NCBI GenBank assembly: GCA_019828565.1
Contig: JAHDYR010000025.1
Span: 248,001 to 312,000 of the forward strand
DNA: 64,000 nt
From: Carpediemonas membranifera BICM
Lineage: Eukaryota; Protista; Fornicata
Reading direction: 5' to 3'
Within the stretch, counting starts at the first letter, position 1, and each line of letters opens with the position of its first letter. Positions 2,921 through 59,066 of this stretch are shown here, piece by piece. Position numbers and translations under genes: made by a program. Below the pieces are notes generated by a model. That model had not been told where the DNA came from. It worked only from the letters and a program-made list of their open reading frames with translations, and made no database searches.

Positions 2921-5900
2921 ATGGCCTTCAAACAACCACAGCACAAGCAGCGAATCAGTTCCTCTTATGAGCTCAAAAGTCACTGTTTCTCATTCATTTC
3001 CAACCAATTTTTCGCGATTTTCTTGCTTTTCAGTCTTATACCAGCCACACATGCGTTGAACTGGCTCCAGGAACAGAAGATATACGCCTCTGACTTCAGT
3101 TCCGGCGATCGCTTTGGCCAAGCGGTGTCAATTTCGAGCGACTCCGCCCTCGTCGGAGCCCACTGGAATGCCAATGCACACGGCACGGCCGCCGGTGCTG
3201 TGTACGTGTTCGTCCGTAACGAGACGGACAACACGTGGTCGCAACAGGACAAGCTCATCGGCTCCCAGATCGACGAGTATGATTACTTTGGTGTGGCCGT
3301 CGCGACTGACGGGGACGTCGCGGCCGTCGGAGCCCACAACCACGAGGTCAACTCCGAGGTCAGCGCCGGCATAGTCACCGTGTTTAACAGGGACGCAGAC
3401 GGCGTGTGGACCGAGGTGGCCTTCTTCGCTGCAGACACACCTCAGGCATACGGCACGTTCGGTCACAGCATCGCCATGTCGGGCGACTACATCGCCGTCG
3501 GGGCAGACGCGGTCGACCCCGGCTCGAGTGACGCCGTCGTCCCTGGAGTGGTGGGGTCGGCATTCATCTACTACAACAACCCGGTGACCGGCTGGGGGTT
3601 CCAGCAGGAGCTCTCCCCAGCAGGCACCCTGTACAGCGACAGAGTGGCAGAATCCATCTCCATCGATGGCGACACCGTCGTCTTCGGAGCGCCATACGCC
3701 AGGTCGAACGAGGGTGTCGTCTTCGTCTACATCCTGTCAGGGGCGACGTGGACCCACCAGATCACCCTCAGCGCCAGTGACGCGGCGTCGGGGGACCGGT
3801 TTGGCTGGGCCGTGAGTGTCTGCGGCGACTACCTCTTCGTGGGGGCGGACTGCAGCGGGACCGATGGCAGCGGCAAGGCGTACATCTTCGAGAGGATTGG
3901 GTCGACCTGGGACGAGGTCATGGCCATCGAAAACCCCCTCTCCGCTGGCCTATTCGGGACCACGGTGTCTGTCAGTGGCAACACTGGCATCATCGCAGCC
4001 AGGGGCACCGCCGCTCTCATATACTACCGCGACGGCGGCGTGTGGTCTCGGATAGACACCCTGGAGCCTGTATCCGCGACATACGTCGACAGGTTCGGCA
4101 GCGCTGTGGCAATCAGCGGCAACATCACCATCATCGCCGACGTGTGGGACAGCAGGGCCGGTTTCGGGACTGGTGCAGTTTATGCATTTGCCGGATACTG
4201 CGACCTGGGCTATAAGCGGTCAGAGTCTCTGTGTGTCGCGTGTTCTGAGGGCGAGTACCAGGACACATATGGCATGACGAGCTGCAAGACGGTCGAGGCC
4301 GGGTACTACGCCCCCAGCGGGTCAGCGCAGACGTCACCACTCGTGTGCGACGGGGGTCGGTGGCAGAATGAGACGGGCCAGGCATCGTGCAAGACGACCG
4401 ACGAGGGCTACTTCACGCCCAGCAACGGGACGGCGATGACGACGCAGATCCCGTGCTCCGCCGGGTATTACCAGGGCGCCAGCGGGGCGTCGTCCTGTGA
4501 GACCGCGCAGGTCGGGTACTACGCCCCCGCCGGGAGCCCGCAGACCGCCCAGCTGGCGTGCAACGGGGGCAAGTTCCAGAACGAGACGGGCCAGGCCACA
4601 TGCTACACGGTCGAGGCGGGGTTCTACACGCCGGCCACAGGACCCCAGTCGGCAGCGATAGAGTGCAACGACGGCAAGTACCAGCCGGACCCGGGCCAGT
4701 CGACCTGTCTCACGGCCACCGCGGGCTGCGTTGTGCCCGCCACCGGGCCCCAGACGACCGCAACACCCTGCAACACGGGATACTTCCAGGGCGAGAGTGG
4801 CGAAAGCACGTGCGACCACTGCCCCGCCCGCTTCAGCACAGGAGGCACGGGGGCGTACGCGGCGTGCGTGGAGTTCATCATCCAGGACACTGCCCTGTCG
4901 TCGGAGTCGGCCCCAATCACCGTGGAGACGGGGCACATGGCGTCCGCCCTCACTGCCGTGGCGGTGGGCAGCTGGTCGACGGAGCTGGTCGGCAATGGGA
5001 CAGAAGTGCTCGCCGTGCCCCTCGTCGCTCCCGGGGACGACCTCTCAGGCAACCACACCGTCGTGTGCACTCTCGCGGACGCCACCACAGCGACGGCGTA
5101 CGCCTCCTTCGACCCGGACTTCGTACTGGACGCGCCCACGCCTGTCATATCAGGCACCACCATCCGGGCGACGGCCATCGGCCCCGCATGCCCCACGGTC
5201 ATGGCGTTCGGCACCATGGGCGCGTTCCCTCTCGATGCCGTGGCCGTGCAGGGCAGCACCATCGCTTGCGCCTCAGCCGACGTCGCCGTCACTGCCGGGG
5301 ATGTGAATACGCATTTTAACCCGAGTATTTCAGCGGTTTCGGCCAACGTCGAGGTTAACATCACCCTTGACGGAGCCAAGTTCGGGTCGACATCTGGACT
5401 TGCAGTCGAATTTGACTCGACCGCTCTTTCTGTGACAATTTCGTCTTCTGGCCAGCTTTGCTTCACACCAGGCGACTTCGAGCCCGGCTCCAACCACACC
5501 GTCGTCGCCAGTCTCGGTGGGACTGCATTCCTCTCCACCACGATCACTGCCGTCGTTGTCCTCGACGGCCCAGACGTTTCCAGCCCGGGCTCATCGGCCT
5601 CATCTCTGTGGGTCGTCCTCCTCGCTGCCAGCGGGGCTGGCGCGGTGGTCATCCTCGCGACATTAGCGCTCCTGGCCGTCTGCTGTGTCAGCTGCGTCAT
5701 CTGTGCTGGTGCGGCGGGGCAGACCGCCGTTGTGGCCGTGAGACGCAGCAAGACTCACTCCAAGACAATCACGCAGCCCTGGGCCCCGCTGCTACAGGCC
5801 GCGTTCGACGGCGACAGCAACCGTGTGAAGGCGCTATGCAGCGCGGGGGTCGACGTCAATGAGGCTGACGCCGACCGCATGACAGCGATCAGCCTGGCGG

Positions 5901-51932: not shown

Positions 51933-53000
51933 ATGACCTCGCCAGCGCCTGTAAGCTCGCTGATTGAGAGGATCAAGTCATCAATCATAGACCATGACGC
52001 GAAAGTTGACACACTGACACAGCTTCGGGAGTACGCAACCAGCCCAACGAGAGTACGTCCACCTCATTGTCCAATTCTCACGCAGCAACTGAGCAGATAC
52101 GACATCAATGACCACATTATGCAACAAATAGTAATTGGAGACCAGGAAGTTAAGGTCGCTGGCCTTGAGCTTCTCTCTGCGATCGTCGACAAGTCTTCGC
52201 CATGCGCCGAGCAGTATGCCTCCGATATGACGACAACTGACGGCCCTGTGAACCTCTTTCTCTCCCTCCTCTCCTCAGGCCAGGATTTCTTCGTGCGTAT
52301 GTCTGCTGTCGAGCTCCTAACCCGCCTCCTCCGCGTGGCCCGCAAGCGGGTGCAGGAGGCGGTCCTCTCCAACAAGGACGGCGGCATCAACAACCTTATG
52401 GACCTCATCGAGTGCGACATGGAAGCGCTGAGGAATGACGCCATCATCCTGCTGACGAGGCTCATCGAAGAGTCCGTGGAGCTCCAGAAGGTCCTGGCGT
52501 TCAATCGCGTCATGGACCGCGTGCTCGCAGTGCTCGTCACAGAAGAGAACATCGCCATTAGGAGGGACGCGACGGCCCTGCTCACCGCGCTTCTCTCAAA
52601 CAGCACAACCGTGACACTCTTCAAGGAGACCGCGACCGATGGTCTGCTCCGCCTGGCGAATAAGATCATTCTCAAGGAGCTGGGCCATCCAGAGTCGGTG
52701 CAGTTTTTGACCTCGATCCTGAGTCCTCTGGCCGGCGGGCAGGGTGTCAGTTCCGCCGCCCTCGAGCGGGAGCAGGAAGCCAACACAGAGCTGCGGACGA
52801 GCTTGGACCAAGCTAACAGGGAGATCGCGTCCCTGCGTGCGGACATGGCGGAACGAGACGAGTACAAGGAGCTCCTGGAGGGCGCCTTGGCTGATCAGGA
52901 GGAAGTCATCGAAACGCTCAAGATGCAGATCAGGAAGTGGAGTGGGGCGCCGCACTTTCTTGCCCCGAGTAGAGAGGTGGCTGACTTGCTGTCTGAGTGA
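51933..53000 (+). CDS. USO1: Miniature p115/Uso1 vesicle tether (probable in-frame intron 52053-52085)
   Basis: DFFVR...LLT, GINNLMDL...EALRNDAIILLTRL...ELQKVLAF head motif; C-terminal LLEGALADQEEVIETLK resembles Uso1_p115_C. Confidence 0.8.
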   Translation: MTSPAPVSSLIERIKSSIIDHDAKVDTLTQLREYATSPTRVRPPHCPILTQQLSRYDINDHIMQQIVIGDQEVKVAGLELLSAIVDKSSPCAEQYASDMTTTDGPVNLFLSLLSSGQDFFVRMSAVELLTRLLRVARKRVQEAVLSNKDGGINNLMDLIECDMEALRNDAIILLTRLIEESVELQKVLAFNRVMDRVLAVLVTEENIAIRRDATALLTALLSNSTTVTLFKETATDGLLRLANKIILKELGHPESVQFLTSILSPLAGGQGVSSAALEREQEANTELRTSLDQANREIASLRADMAERDEYKELLEGALADQEEVIETLKMQIRKWSGAPHFLAPSREVADLLSE

Positions 53001-53071
53001 GTAAACTTTGGCTTTGATGCCGCATTCCGATGCTGGGATGGCGATGGTACTATCCTGCACATTTTCATACC

Positions 53072-53539
53072 ATGAACAGCGATACTACCTGTTTTGTTGC
53101 CGCTGGCGATTTATTTGACAGTCTTGAACCTAAGTTAAGCACCAAGAGGGGCGATGCGCTCTCATTTTTTACTGTATACAAGTACGTCTCGAAGTTACAC
53201 GATTATGGTGAAGAAGTCGACATGGACGTCATTGCAGACTCATTTAAGAGCGTCAGCTCATTTTCAGACAAAGTTACAAGGAAGGAGTTTGGTCATCTTC
53301 TCGAGGTAATCGACCACCGCATCGCACGAACCCGCGATCTAATTTGGGATTTCCGGTCGATGAAGCGCCCCGGCCAGGTGGGGATCCCAAACACAGAGGC
53401 CCACTTGCTGTTCCAGAAGTACATGGGCATCCACTACAACGATGCCGAGTTCGATGACTGGATTCTCAAACGGCCCAGCCCATTCTCGAACGTGCTTTTC
53501 AAGGAGGTCGTCGTTCAACTTGCCGGGTCCGATGACTAG
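53072..53539 (+). CDS. Hypothetical protein with degenerate EF-hand-like helices
   Basis: FKSVSSFSDKVTRKEF and WDFRSMKRPGQVGIPNTEAHLLF have EF-hand spacing but lack full Ca ligands. Confidence 0.5.
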   Translation: MNSDTTCFVAAGDLFDSLEPKLSTKRGDALSFFTVYKYVSKLHDYGEEVDMDVIADSFKSVSSFSDKVTRKEFGHLLEVIDHRIARTRDLIWDFRSMKRPGQVGIPNTEAHLLFQKYMGIHYNDAEFDDWILKRPSPFSNVLFKEVVVQLAGSDD

Positions 53540-53747
53540 ATCTATGTCGTCATGTCGGGCCGGATCTGATACAGGACCAGCTGTGAAGAGTTGGCTGCTT
53601 CCCGTCGTTGAAGATCTCTCGTCGGAGTCTTAGGCCATGCTGATGCCGCCTTTGTGCCGGCGGTAAATGTCGCTGGACCGCTTACTTCTTGGTTTCCGGT
53701 TCCCGCGTGTGACCTCTGTATGAATGACATGCCACCAGCGGACAGCG

Positions 53748-56552
53748 ATGGAGGAGGATGACCATGAGCGTCATGTGCTCATCTCTCGTCTCATTGCAAA
53801 GCGGAAGACAATTAAGGCCCTCAAGGCCCAATACAAGGCAATTGTAGTTGAGAATAACGCCATCGAGGCTGTGTTGAAAGGATCCCAGGCCCTGTATGTT
53901 GTAATCACCGCCACGTGCAAGATACTGAAGTCAAACGATGCTTTCAAGCGCATTTACAACGAACCATCGCGACGGCACCTCCCATCGACGCTCTTCCGCA
54001 ATGCCGTCAACCTCCCAACCGCACTGACCCCACGAGCTGTCTTTGAAGACCAGCTAGTGAGTGGGGAACGCTGCCACAACCTGCTGTGGACAGTACAGGC
54101 CGAGTTCGAGTCTGGTCGACTCCGGAAGGTCGCGATGGTGGGAGTTGTCGAACGAACGGCCCCGCCGGAGCAGTATCAGGGCGAGAACAGCACTACAGCG
54201 ATCTTCAGGATGATGAACACCTTCGCGGCAAACGCCTTCTGGGTGGCGTGCATCAGCAAACGTTACATCAACGGTGTGCGCATCTTCTACGTCAGCCACC
54301 ACATCGAGGCCTGGTACGAGGTCCCTGCAGCAGAGATCTGCGACGACACGGCCATGACCTTCCTCCAGGGCGTCGACCCTGAGCAGCGGGAGTCTGTGGC
54401 TGCAACATGGATGGACTTTGTCCACGGTAAGTCTGCCACTGTGGACGTGACATACCGTGCCGTCGGCCGTCTCACAGGAAAGAAGACGTGGATCCGCTCG
54501 AGGGCGGTGAAGCTGGTGGATGTGCAGGAGGGGGATCCGATGGAGACGAGCTGGATCTTCGGGACCATCGAGGACATATCGGAGAAGCTGAGGCGGGAGG
54601 CCGAGTACGAGCGCCAGTCGCACATATTCGACCAGATCACTAACCACATCCAGGATGTCGTGTTTATTGCGGATGTCCGGAATTACCCCGAGACCGGTCT
54701 GATCGAGGGCACAACCGTGTCCAACTACTGGGAAACCATGACGGGGACGCCCGCGACGTTCTTCGAGGGCAGCTTCGACCCCGATTGCCTCCGCCCCCTC
54801 CTTGTTCCTGAGGAAGCGGAATGGTTTATGAACCGGATCCGGCTCTTCTTGCGGGGAGCCGGCCCGTTCAACATCAGCCACAGGTTTATCCACCAGCTGA
54901 CGGGCGAGATCACGCACTGGATGACGAGATCAACCATCGTCCGAGACAACGCGGGTCGACCCGTCACAGCGATCATCGTCGGTTCCTACAAAACTGCGGA
55001 GCATTTCTTATCCGTCGAGATGGCCAAGAAGAAGCTGATATTCGACCAGATGTCACGGTCCATCGACGACATCTTCTACGTTGCCAACTTCAACCCCGAG
55101 ATAATGCCCGAGGACACCCCCCAGATCTTCATCCCGCTCAAGTTTGTCTCAGATTCGTCCTCCGCAGTTTTAGGTATTGCTCCAGAGTTGCTTTGCTACC
55201 ACCCTTCGCTGTGGCTCGAGCGCATTGCCCCCGAAGACCGCGACCGCGTGTGCAAGGCAGTCCGGACTTACCGCCACGAATGCCTGGACTGCCCCAGCAG
55301 AGCAAAGCTGGAGGTGAAGAGCGCGATCCTGGTCAATGAGGAGCACCGCACCGTTGTCTGCTGCAGCAGGCCGATCGTCGGTCTCCGGGGCGATGTACGC
55401 CGTCTCGTCGGCACATGGTCGGATATCACAAGCCTTGTCCGCCAGGAAGAGGACCTGAACCGCGCCATCCGTCGTTTCGACATGATCAGTGACTCCGTTG
55501 ACTCCCTCTTCTACCTCATCGCCTCGCCCGAGGGAACGAGTGAATATCGCATCGTTTACGTCAACCGTTTCAACGAGCAATGGACTGGACGGACCCGCGA
55601 GGCCCTCTACCAGCGGGGGTCGGCAGAGTGGTACGACCAGATCCACCCCGACGACAGGGACATGGTCAGACGCACGTTTGACGACAGCACTGGCCGGAAG
55701 AGGGAGCGGCAGTACCGCATGCTATTCGACGACGGCAACGTCCGCTACACCATCAATCGCCGGGTGCAGTTTAAGACAGTAGGCGGCATGAGATATTTGG
55801 CCGGGTTTGTTTTCGACATCACTGAGATGGTTGAGGCCCAGCAGCGCAAGACCGAGGCCCTCGCTCAGATGCACAATGCTCAGCGGCTCGAGAGCCTCGG
55901 CGTCCTCGCGGGAGGCGTGTCACATGATCTGAACAACGTCCTCACGATCATCATGGGCGACGCCGATCTGATCCTCGAGATATCAGCCCCGGATGACCCG
56001 ATCTGCCTCTTCATCGACTCCATCCTGTGTGCATGCATGAAGGCGAGCAGGTTCACGAGCCAGCTGCTCGCGTACAGCGGGCAGGGCCAGCACATGATCG
56101 TCAAGGTCAACCTCACCGTGCTCCTCGAGGGCATGGCGGAATTCATCACGGCGAGCATGCCCCCACACATCACGGTCCACTGGAAGCTGTCACGGGCGAG
56201 CACGCTGCCCAGCATCAAGGGCGACCCTGCGCAGCTACAGCAGGTCGTCAACAACGTCGTGTCCAACGGGGTCGAGGCGATTGGGTCTAATGAGGGCCAT
56301 CTCACCATCTCCACGGGGTTCTGCTCCAAGTCGAACGACTGCGTCTACCTGACGATCGCCGACACCGGCTGCGGCATGAGCAACGAAGTAGCCGAGCGGA
56401 TCTTCGACCCGTTCTACTCGACCAAGACGACCTCGGGCCGGGGGCTTGGGATGGCCGCGGTTCGGGGCATCGTTGCCCATCACAGGGGCACCATAGAAAC
56501 GGTGTCCGTGCCCAACGAGGGCAGCATCATCGTGCTGAAGTTCCCCGTGTAG
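53748..56552 (+). CDS. Soluble multi-PAS sensor histidine kinase, bacterial type, no receiver domain
   Basis: Four to five PAS/PAC modules (FYVS..IE, VDPEQRE, IAPEDRDRV, IHPDDRDMV, DIT/DIS); H-box LESLGVLAGGVSHDLNN; N-box NVVSNGVEAI; DTGCGM; IFDPFYSTK; GRGLGM. Confidence 0.95.
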   Translation: MEEDDHERHVLISRLIAKRKTIKALKAQYKAIVVENNAIEAVLKGSQALYVVITATCKILKSNDAFKRIYNEPSRRHLPSTLFRNAVNLPTALTPRAVFEDQLVSGERCHNLLWTVQAEFESGRLRKVAMVGVVERTAPPEQYQGENSTTAIFRMMNTFAANAFWVACISKRYINGVRIFYVSHHIEAWYEVPAAEICDDTAMTFLQGVDPEQRESVAATWMDFVHGKSATVDVTYRAVGRLTGKKTWIRSRAVKLVDVQEGDPMETSWIFGTIEDISEKLRREAEYERQSHIFDQITNHIQDVVFIADVRNYPETGLIEGTTVSNYWETMTGTPATFFEGSFDPDCLRPLLVPEEAEWFMNRIRLFLRGAGPFNISHRFIHQLTGEITHWMTRSTIVRDNAGRPVTAIIVGSYKTAEHFLSVEMAKKKLIFDQMSRSIDDIFYVANFNPEIMPEDTPQIFIPLKFVSDSSSAVLGIAPELLCYHPSLWLERIAPEDRDRVCKAVRTYRHECLDCPSRAKLEVKSAILVNEEHRTVVCCSRPIVGLRGDVRRLVGTWSDITSLVRQEEDLNRAIRRFDMISDSVDSLFYLIASPEGTSEYRIVYVNRFNEQWTGRTREALYQRGSAEWYDQIHPDDRDMVRRTFDDSTGRKRERQYRMLFDDGNVRYTINRRVQFKTVGGMRYLAGFVFDITEMVEAQQRKTEALAQMHNAQRLESLGVLAGGVSHDLNNVLTIIMGDADLILEISAPDDPICLFIDSILCACMKASRFTSQLLAYSGQGQHMIVKVNLTVLLEGMAEFITASMPPHITVHWKLSRASTLPSIKGDPAQLQQVVNNVVSNGVEAIGSNEGHLTISTGFCSKSNDCVYLTIADTGCGMSNEVAERIFDPFYSTKTTSGRGLGMAAVRGIVAHHRGTIETVSVPNEGSIIVLKFPV

Positions 56553-56941
56553 GTCAGGCTGGTATAAAATATTGCGGCTGTGAACTGGGTTGGGTCGATA
56601 ACGGTGGTGAGTTAGTCTACTGAAGAAGGTCCTGACCCACGTACAGACTGCTGGCAGTGGAGATGCGATTGACATGTGACGGGGTGACTTCGGCAAGGGT
56701 CGACCATCGGTGATTGTGTATGAAGTGCGAACGGCATCCACTCGAACTCTTGTCGGTCTTATCAATGTTATGTAGTGCTCTCGTTGACTGCCCAAGCCAC
56801 TCAGCCGCTGTCTGGCTGAGTCCAGTGTCCTTGACCGGCCGTAAGATCGCAACAGACTTGAGTCAACGATCGCCCAAATCACTCAGCACTCCCAATCACC
56901 AGAACCGCACTATTTACCATAGTATCGTGATTAAATATCCC

Positions 56942-58603
56942 CTACAGCCGGAGTGGGTAGAGCGCCTTGGGCTCGGCCATGGGCAGGTCGTCCATCGACA
57001 TCTTGGCCACATCCCCACCAAAGCTCACGCTGAACCACTTCCCGCCACTGTCCTTGAAGGCTGGCCGCCCATCCCCTGTGATCAGCTCCGTTGCCTCGAA
57101 CGGGAGCGCCAGCACCTCATGCAGGCCGGTGTCGAACTGATGCCGACTGACGTGGGTCTGGCCGCCGCAGGTCCAGCAGAGCAGGCGGGAATCGGTGCTA
57201 TACGGGTCGTAGAAGAGGCTCGTCGGCTGGCAGGGGAAGACCAGCGGCGTGGCCGTGGAGCAGACGTCGCCGACCGAGAAGCCAGGCAGTAACCGCGCCT
57301 GGGCAATACATACCGGTACCTCGCCAGCAAACAGCACGCGGGGCCCACTGAGGAAGACACTGCACACGTCGGTGACGGGGAGCCCGTCCTCGTCGCCCTC
57401 CTCGAAGTTCGAGTACTCGATCTCGCAGGCACCAAAGATGACGTCGACATGGAACGGCAGGGCCTGGAACCCGGTGATGTCCTTGCAATGACCCAGCCCG
57501 AGCTGGCCGTAGGAGTTCAGTCCCGCGATCAGCTGGTGGCTGCCCGACGTGAGCACGACGGAGTAGGACTCCGAGAGAATGGTGTCGGGGACGAAGGAGG
57601 AGGGCAGGGCGATCTGGTTGAATAACCGGCCGTCCTTGAACTGGCCTAAGAAGCCGTTGGTGTTTCGTCCGGCAACGACAAGCCCCACCGGTGTCAGGAG
57701 GAAAGAACGGTCGTCCGTAAGGTGAATTCCGACAACCAGCCTGTCCTTGTGCCATGCTGGCAGGTTTGACTCATACTTGGCGACGTCCGGGCACGCCGGG
57801 AACCGAAGACGGACGGGGTGCCGGATAGCCTCGAGAGCCACGTCTGCCCGACCCTCGCCCACGCCCAGCTGTCCGTTTTCACACGAGCCCCAGACGTAGA
57901 TGCCTTTGGGCGTCGTGGCGACGAGCGTGGACCCGTGGTTGCTGTGCATGTCGGTTATGGGTGGCATGCGGCGCCAGGTGTACTGTAGGTCGGGCGGATC
58001 AAGGTAGACCTCGGAGTAGCGGGCGAAGAGACGACCTGCGTACCTGCGAAGGAATCGGAAGTGGTGGTATTGTTTGACGATGCCGTCCTTCTCTGCTACT
58101 TGGTGGACGAAGAAAAACTTCTTGCAAAGGAACCAGGGCGCCTTATCTGGGTATGTCCGCTTTCTTTCCCGGTTCAATACGTCGGGGTCGGCCCCTGAGT
58201 GCATAAGAACGGCCCACAGAGTGCCCTGGAGGAGTGTGTGGAGCTGCTCGGGCAGCACTTGTCCGGCCGTCAAGTCGACGTTCATGCTCAGCTCTGGGCC
58301 ATCGCACATTATCTTCCTGGCCCGAGCGATCAATGATTCCGCCCTTGGCGAGAGGAATGGCGGCAAAGTGTCAAGCATGTGAATGAACTTCTTCTGAGCG
58401 TCCTCTAGGACATCCGAAGCATCGGAAACATCACGACGCCGTCGTATAAGTGATTCAAATTCGTATCTGATTGCACACGTCAACATTTGTGGGATGTTCC
58501 CCGGTGTTGAACTTGTGGCTAAGATTGATTGCTGGTATGCGTCAGCTAAGCATCGAAGCGTATTTCCTGTCATATCATTGCCCTTCCTGCCCTCATCTTC
58601 CAT
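56942..58603 (-). CDS. Lineage-specific RCC1-like repeat family, copy C
   Basis: LSMNVDL..LHTLLQGTLWAVLMHSGADPD..WFLCKKFFFVHQVAEKDG; IYVWGSCENGQLG; AGLNSYGQLGLGH. Confidence 0.85.
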   Translation of the reverse strand: MEDEGRKGNDMTGNTLRCLADAYQQSILATSSTPGNIPQMLTCAIRYEFESLIRRRRDVSDASDVLEDAQKKFIHMLDTLPPFLSPRAESLIARARKIMCDGPELSMNVDLTAGQVLPEQLHTLLQGTLWAVLMHSGADPDVLNRERKRTYPDKAPWFLCKKFFFVHQVAEKDGIVKQYHHFRFLRRYAGRLFARYSEVYLDPPDLQYTWRRMPPITDMHSNHGSTLVATTPKGIYVWGSCENGQLGVGEGRADVALEAIRHPVRLRFPACPDVAKYESNLPAWHKDRLVVGIHLTDDRSFLLTPVGLVVAGRNTNGFLGQFKDGRLFNQIALPSSFVPDTILSESYSVVLTSGSHQLIAGLNSYGQLGLGHCKDITGFQALPFHVDVIFGACEIEYSNFEEGDEDGLPVTDVCSVFLSGPRVLFAGEVPVCIAQARLLPGFSVGDVCSTATPLVFPCQPTSLFYDPYSTDSRLLCWTCGGQTHVSRHQFDTGLHEVLALPFEATELITGDGRPAFKDSGGKWFSVSFGGDVAKMSMDDLPMAEPKALYPLRL

Positions 58604-59066
58604 GATTTGTCTCGAATGACAAGGCACTGCCCGCGGCGAAATTGAGAGCCTATCCTGCTCGATATTTGGAAGATTTTTGACTCTGTCGGAGTCAGGACGA
58701 AGACGAAAACGTGGCAAAAGCGGTATATTCACGCCTTGGTCATCCTATTGTTTCGGCCCGACCCCGTTCCATTACCATTGTTGCAGTTTGACCAAAGAGC
58801 ATAGACGATGCCTGAGGTGCTGGAAACACGGGCACTGACTGATGGTCATGTGCGTCACCCGGCTTGATGTAGTTGCTGTCTGACGTGGGGCTCACCATTT
58901 GAGGCTCACGAGATCACCGGGTTCTCATCCGATGAGGATGATGAAGACGATCTCCCAGCCGACATAAGAAGGGAGGAGTGGGCCATGGTAGTATTGCGCA
59001 GTACAATAGCTTGGTTGACCCAATAGAGTCAGTCGAACCCAATCCTGCGAAAACTAGCCAGTCTTC

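Follow-up and report, generated by a model that had tools for sequence, protein, structure and literature searches.

Signalling by His-Asp phosphotransfer in eukaryotes usually runs from a hybrid kinase, which carries its own receiver, through a histidine phosphotransfer protein (HPt) to a regulator, and the receiver-less kinases of eukaryotes are mostly rewired relics of the plastid lineage. In Bacillus, several receiver-less, PAS-rich kinases (KinA-E) act on one stand-alone receiver (Spo0F) and through it on a phosphotransferase (Spo0B). Here we describe a receiver-less five-PAS histidine kinase gene in a window of 64,000 nucleotides from Carpediemonas membranifera, a free-living low-oxygen protist of the Fornicata (contig JAHDYR010000025.1, positions 248,001 to 312,000; G000:C13:248001-312000 in a genome of 24.2 Mb and 69 contigs).

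Most eukaryotic histidine kinases are hybrids, the listed receiver-less exceptions being phytochromes, ERS2-type receptors, CSK, Ectocarpus EsiliHK6 and one Tetrahymena kinase (PMC6324907, PMC6944256). Among described relays, Spo0F is a single-domain intermediary receiver (PMC9981736), the Dictyostelium Dhk-RdeA-RegA system ends in a cAMP phosphodiesterase, RegA, controlled by the phosphorelay (PMC4758236), and in Caulobacter the multi-PAS kinase CckA is modulated by DivL, a multi-PAS relative without the phospho-accepting His (10.1101/323444). In metamonads, where the original prediction had taken two-component signalling to be uncharacterised, Trichomonas has seven described hybrid kinases, and Giardia and Spironucleus have none (PMC6324907). 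GenBank annotates the Carpediemonas genes discussed below as histidine kinases; our literature search found no paper linking this organism to histidine kinases or two-component signalling, and the word 'histidine' is absent from its genome paper.

The kinase gene and its product

The gene consists of an uninterrupted open reading frame ending in LKFPV and a stop codon, with the following features (positions in the window):

53748..56552, + strand: receiver-less five-PAS histidine kinase gene, 934 amino acids, no intron needed
53748..53879, + strand: N-terminal helix, probable coiled coil (model; common to most paralogs)
53880..54158, + strand: PAS-A, the most divergent, missed by Pfam (model secondary structure; mean family identity 24%)
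54189..54581, + strand: PAS-B, PAS_3 type (Pfam and model)
54615..54995, + strand: PAS-C, PAS_3 type, family motif W-x3-R-x3-F-x2-G (Pfam and model)
55029..55430, + strand: PAS-D, PAS_3 type (Pfam and model)
55461..55823, + strand: PAS-E, PAS_3 type, kinase-proximal (Pfam and model)
55857..56093, + strand: DHp domain, phospho-acceptor His at 55923-55925 in an H-D-L-N-N motif
56199..56549, + strand: HATPase_c with N, G1, F and G2 boxes

An alternative in-frame ATG at 53724 would give 942 amino acids; both the 934-residue GenBank model and the alignment with the paralog L035 begin at 53748. Pfam recognises four PAS_3 stretches, a weak HisKA (E 2e-3) and HATPase_c, and finds no Response_reg in the frame. 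An AlphaFold model built on an alignment of ten paralogs comprises the N-terminal helix, five PAS folds, DHp and the catalytic and ATP-binding (CA) domain (mean predicted local distance difference test, pLDDT, 75.8; predicted template-modelling score 0.31); a single-sequence model of PAS-B/C was of low confidence (pLDDT 39), and Foldseek with the whole model returned only generic PAS-kinase matches with low template-modelling scores. The protein has no transmembrane-like window (maximum Kyte-Doolittle 19-mer 1.37). The H-box (LAGGVSHDLNN, of the pattern LAGG.[AS]HD.NN), the N-box and the G1 (DTGCGM), F (FDPF) and G2 (GRGLGM) boxes are all intact, and Caulobacter CckA (PDB 5idj, E 3e-22) is of the same H-box class. 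By sequence the kinase is thus of the CckA/NtrB-like class, as the original prediction had held, and its picture of an intronless, soluble, receiver-less multi-PAS kinase was likewise borne out, the number of PAS domains now being five. An acidic residue after the phospho-His together with Asn or Thr at H+4 is compatible with both kinase and phosphatase activity, and the H-D-x-x-N motif of this protein would fit such a double role.

The best NCBIfam models (VirA-like, AtoS and CckA) all score well under their cut-offs, the CckA models giving 97-121 bits against a cut-off of 1000; with the missing membrane segment and receiver, this rules out a CckA ortholog. A DivL-like pseudokinase is ruled out by the phospho-His, and a canonical eukaryotic hybrid by the lack of a receiver, the terminal 65 bases being without RNA coverage.

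The gene is transcribed. RNA-derived contigs cover most of it at a depth of about 2-10, whereas the pair of genes upstream reaches 200-260 and the one downstream 25. The two runs used (X1 and X2) amount to a single data set, and the depth of contigs reflects expression only poorly. The contigs come from a public run that also holds a spliced GT..AG junction at 52052-52086, within the gene for a neighbouring ARM protein, and they show no splice joint within or after the kinase gene. Coverage is zero over 56488-56861, which comprises the terminal 65 bases of the kinase and intergenic sequence. The third-position GC content (GC3) of the kinase, 0.79, lies within the range of the flanking genes (0.62-0.91), and a T-A-A-A motif follows the stop codon by about 15 nucleotides, as in many host genes. 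Only 390 bp separate this stop from that of the convergent gene downstream, and genome searches gave no receiver match in this gap or anywhere near C13:304550. These observations confirm a real, weakly transcribed nuclear gene of C. membranifera, and the objection that the gene might not be expressed fails.

Nothing in the PAS domains supports the O2 or redox sensor that had been proposed. The LOV motif NCRFLQ with its reactive Cys is absent from all 10 aligned paralogs. In FixL the haem-ligating His is expected on the helix following a P-[ED] motif; none of the four helices after this motif in the present protein has a His, other modes of haem or flavin binding being conceivable. On these sequence grounds, O2/redox sensing by the kinase is unsupported.

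Paralogs and bacterial relatives

What had been taken for a lone gene belongs to a family of 14 paralogous loci on eight contigs, none with an attached receiver; the search for spliced members covered single frames or individual exons. Ten loci consist of one open frame each, 917-979 amino acids long, and all PAS_3 matches of the genome fall within the family. The phospho-His is retained as H-[DE] in nine of the 14 and replaced in five, by Cys in L034 and by Ser in L030, L032, L033 and L040. These five keep the ATPase fold, a DivL-like state; the four of them included in the tree share one subclade. Multi-PAS kinases that keep the His coexist with His-less relatives as in the Caulobacter CckA/DivL pair (10.1101/323444), but the Carpediemonas kinase has neither membrane anchor nor receiver, and its His-less counterparts are in-family paralogs. 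The first Asn of the N-box is missing in several paralogs. The kinase cores form one clade in two quick trees (Shimodaira-Hasegawa-like approximate likelihood-ratio test, SH-aLRT, 100 and 98). Between paralogs, identity is 50% in DHp and CA and 24-32% in the PAS domains, a pattern that fits diversified inputs acting on a shared output.

Beyond the paralogs, the best 112 matches to the core are bacterial-type PAS kinases with 39-45% identity, and 111 of them carry a C-terminal receiver. At the 80 best GTDB loci, the receiver is in frame in 75, in a shifted frame in one, cut by contig ends in two and missing in two; no cyanobacteria occur among them. Such CckA-type hybrids, found in Acidobacteriota, Geobacteraceae, Planctomycetota, Zetaproteobacteria and others, share with the Carpediemonas kinases soluble PAS_3 arrays, 39-46% identity in the core and the signature QKLESLGVLAGGIAHDFNN / LLAYSGKG / FTTKFTGRGLG, but differ from all 14 copies in their receiver, and searching beyond Carpediemonas yielded no relative with a colinear five-PAS layout. 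The latter result comes from a profile search of 1.84 billion representatives, used because word matching with the PAS region had low sensitivity (only two known paralogs recovered). Full-length colinear matches were confined to C. membranifera, and those ranked next were multi-stretch, 119 of 138 having a C-terminal receiver. The five-PAS family is therefore likely restricted to Carpediemonas, although fragments from other fornicates could rank lower.

In a quick, unrooted tree the Carpediemonas clade adjoins mainly Acidobacteriota (SH-aLRT 100 for the split). The segment between the N and G1 boxes, 32 residues in this kinase compared with about 47 in most bacterial relatives, is also short in the rest of the clade and in a few Acidobacteriota proteins (L054, L106, P0022). 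We regard this placement as a lead only. A bacterial origin of the family is supported by its sequence relationships, and lateral acquisition, already suspected in the original prediction, agrees with host flanks, host-like codon composition, transcription and a lineage-specific clade whose nearest relatives are bacterial. Since these relatives are hybrids, the most likely history is loss of the receiver and not import of a simple kinase; one transfer of a hybrid kinase, with loss of the receiver before the 14-copy expansion, would be the simplest reading, and a donor already lacking the receiver is conceivable.

Like the phytochromes, ethylene receptors and CSK, the Carpediemonas kinase is nuclear-encoded and receiver-less (PMC6324907). 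These known cases are linked to plastids or cyanobacteria and often phosphorylate Ser/Thr, whereas the Carpediemonas family is PAS-only by Pfam (no GAF/PHY or ethylene-binding membrane domain was found), non-cyanobacterial and present in 14 copies, nine with the His. Carpediemonas appears to have taken the reverse route, from hybrid to non-hybrid, followed by expansion to 14 copies, most of them still with the His.

Candidate acceptors and competing explanations

The phosphate on the His of a kinase passes to an Asp and not directly to an HPt, so the known candidate acceptors are the nine receivers that genome searches detected outside the family. The inventory thus comprises 14 + 7 kinases, one HPt and two regulators. 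Seven receivers belong to soluble PocR-HisKA-HATPase-REC hybrids (L044-L050) unrelated to the 14-copy family, with TorS, BarA and LuxQ as best models and an SHD(M)RTP H-box. The eighth is fused to a class I phosphodiesterase in a RegA-like layout (REC-PDEase_I, L051:2403-4229, - strand); the metal ligands of this enzyme are kept and it has a serine-rich insert, the EFFxQG motif and the invariant-Gln pocket not being recognisable. All eight retain the catalytic Asp and Lys. The ninth, L043 on contig C1, is the only stand-alone receiver protein of the genome: 315 amino acids, with a low-complexity N-terminus of 160 residues and all catalytic residues (D-D, D, S, K). The single HPt gene (L052:1381-1773; G000:C26, ~369518-369910) keeps its phospho-His (HKLRGSS) and has a 31-nt GT..AG intron candidate; in L049 and L050 a GT..AG intron candidate lies at the same receiver site.

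The stand-alone receiver appears to be the best-fitting of the nine because it matches donor-type receivers better (66 bits versus medians of 31-43 for the hybrid receivers) and is the sole bearer of S-A-Y at the S/T site. The motif S[GA]Y occurs in 50 of 66 donor-type receivers versus 2 of 61 others, and in neither the phosphodiesterase receiver nor the seven hybrid receivers. A motif at this site (FATGUY) marks CckA-type and receiver-only intermediary receivers (PMC9981736); compared with the FxSGY-like form, the IVSAY of the stand-alone receiver matches in S and Y and differs in G and F.

We see an even chance that the His-bearing kinases act in trans on this stand-alone receiver, possibly feeding the HPt and the phosphodiesterase. 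The observed basis is the intact core, the absence of a receiver, transcription, monophyly and the hybrid state of the relatives. The protein would be a soluble, probably dimeric sensor kinase/phosphatase whose ancestor, a single bacterial multi-PAS hybrid of CckA type gained by lateral transfer, lost its C-terminal receiver ahead of the expansion in the Carpediemonas lineage. Input at the five PAS domains, by ligand or protein contact, would set autophosphorylation of the His, and the phosphate would have to pass in trans to an Asp. The nine His-bearing paralogs would converge on the stand-alone receiver as likeliest acceptor, which may be the end point or may pass the phosphate on, as the intermediaries Spo0F and MrrA do, through the single HPt to the receiver-phosphodiesterase, a route that would join the branch used by the seven PocR hybrids. 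The five His-less paralogs probably are DivL-like modulators or phosphatases.

Several points weigh against this proposal. The stand-alone receiver lacks a Gly found in 66 of 66 donor receivers, scores as intermediate in a profile classifier and in free trees does not group within the donor clade; all trees were quick ones, without bootstrap or root. The genes of the kinases and of their candidate partners are unlinked, expression of the kinase is low, and five of the 14 copies have lost the His, a hint that the family could do without phosphorylating it. The nucleotide pocket of the phosphodiesterase is divergent, and phosphotransfer is putative, every step beyond the domain content being inferred.

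The original prediction had called for a separate response regulator in a prokaryote-style pathway. Candidates for the regulator do exist in the genome; a plain prokaryote-style pair was probably not imported, and given the seven hybrids, the HPt and the receiver-phosphodiesterase, the pathway may be a relay rather than a plain two-step system. The proposed wiring is analogous to the Bacillus relay, an analogy only, with another kinase subfamily, an HPt in place of Spo0B, a low-complexity N-terminus on the receiver and a phosphodiesterase as proposed output. The seven hybrids, the HPt and the receiver-class I phosphodiesterase also make up a kit like that of Dictyostelium, but the kinase studied here is non-hybrid and of another class, and the phosphodiesterase, RegA-like in layout, has a divergent nucleotide pocket.

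Gene fission would add an origin to the preferred explanation, with which it is compatible: the stand-alone receiver would have begun as the C-terminal domain of the donor hybrid from which the kinases descend and been cut off from it. We hold this somewhat doubtful after BLAST/phmmer searches, two trees, an approximately unbiased (AU) test and the profile classifier. Its S-A-Y motif speaks for such a descent, as do the scores against it of donor receivers picked by the kinase alone (median 49.8 bits versus 44.7 for those picked by the stand-alone receiver) and the AU test, with which the grouping is compatible (p 0.70, the tree under constraint being 9.2 log-likelihood units above the quick free tree). 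Against it stand the absence of the invariant Gly and of the Thr two positions past the phospho-Asp, the position in free trees and the best single match, an NtrC-type regulator; a plasmid tblastn and an NCBIfam scan of this receiver were uninformative. Rather unlikely, though worth stating, is the fullest version of the scheme, in which a laterally acquired bacterial hybrid, either split in two or reduced to a kinase half that took another receiver as partner, became a Bacillus-like four-part relay: nine active kinases with five pseudokinase modulators, the free receiver, the HPt and the receiver-phosphodiesterase, merging with the independent hybrid branch. If true, a family of eukaryotic kinases, cytosolic and unconnected with plastids, would signal directly from His to Asp in trans.

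Two further explanations are both improbable. The kinases might directly phosphorylate the receiver-phosphodiesterase, or in trans the seven PocR hybrid receivers in a multikinase network, the stand-alone receiver serving the HPt branch only. The catalytic residues of these eight receivers would permit it, and cross-phosphorylation among bacterial hybrid kinases is documented (PMC8175716), but the hybrids are of another kinase class, and their receivers match the donor type worse and have no S[GA]Y. No more probable is a family rewired away from His-Asp transfer, towards ATP-dependent conformational change, scaffolding or Ser/Thr phosphorylation, the His being a relic. Receiver-less eukaryotic kinases are known to have taken this course, for instance plant phytochromes, ERS2-type receptors and CSK (PMC6324907), and the five His-less copies and the missing N-box Asn of several paralogs point the same way. 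Yet H-[DE] is kept in nine copies, His loss is limited to one subclade, DHp and CA are far better conserved than the PAS domains, and intact receivers and an HPt are present in the genome. Finally, an intronless, bacterial-looking gene with 65 uncovered terminal bases might suggest a contaminant, a chimeric assembly or a downstream exon that adds a receiver by splicing. These readings can be rejected in view of a 1.02-Mb contig with eukaryotic flanks, 14 paralogs on eight contigs of the host, more closely related to one another than to bacterial sequences, host-like GC3, presence in a spliced transcriptome, an intergenic gap with neither receiver nor RNA coverage and no unassigned receiver exon near any of the 14 copies.

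With its 14 + 7 kinases, one HPt and two regulators, the network is small and fully listed, which makes specificity testable where many kinases share few receivers and bears on why eukaryotes normally favour hybrids. It is also a rich system in a free-living fornicate, in contrast to Giardia and Spironucleus, which have none.

Gene models, neighbouring genes and minor observations

Among the His-less paralogs, L030:4300-6068 is shortened, its N-terminal helix running straight into the end of PAS-C so that PAS-A to most of PAS-C are absent. It has two GT..AG intron candidates of about 30 nt, and L040 also has a candidate of this kind, both sets predicted from sequence alone. L032:2969-6011 and L033:3021-6062 are 99.7% identical and face opposite ways on C13 at a distance of about 18 kb, the result of either a recent duplication or an assembly artefact. 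At the L040 intron site each shows a GT donor for which the assembly offers no clean AG, and L033 carries an additional frameshift. Two GenBank models of paralogs look doubtful. In the C1 paralog, the annotated 'introns' (L038:4808-4844 and 5454-5488) excise conserved residues and resemble bridged frameshifts, and KAG9396574.1 (L041:5468-6148) joins a kinase to an adjacent tRNA-editing (YbaK-type) gene and looks mis-built. A divergent class I phosphodiesterase gene, with GD as its first HD motif, lies head-to-head with the C54 kinase pair (L039:1-2265, - strand).

PocR has 20 matches in the genome; beyond the hybrids, about 11 are in open frames of 1900-2160 amino acids, and one shares a 762-residue frame with a phosphodiesterase (C67:818859-820637). 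By eye, TnpB/Fanzor-like open reading frames stand beside the stand-alone receiver (L043:2647-3573), a kinase paralog (L038:1417-2346) and the HPt gene (L052:2-1036), which probably reflects the mere abundance of such elements.

The genes flanking the kinase in the window are eukaryotic, coding for an RPL9-type ribosomal L6 protein, the ARM protein with its RNA-supported intron, RCC1-repeat, rhodanese/Cdc25-type, importin-beta, Spt6-type and DHHC proteins and the primase large subunit. The immediate context is:

53030..53539, + strand: upstream host gene without Pfam or NCBIfam match, transcribed at a depth of ~200 (context only)
56550..56941, + strand: stop codon and short intergenic sequence up to the convergent gene, without receiver exon
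56942..58732, - strand: convergent RCC1-repeat host gene downstream (context only)

The small upstream gene at 53030-53539 (+ strand) resembles, by eye, one for a degenerate EF-hand protein.

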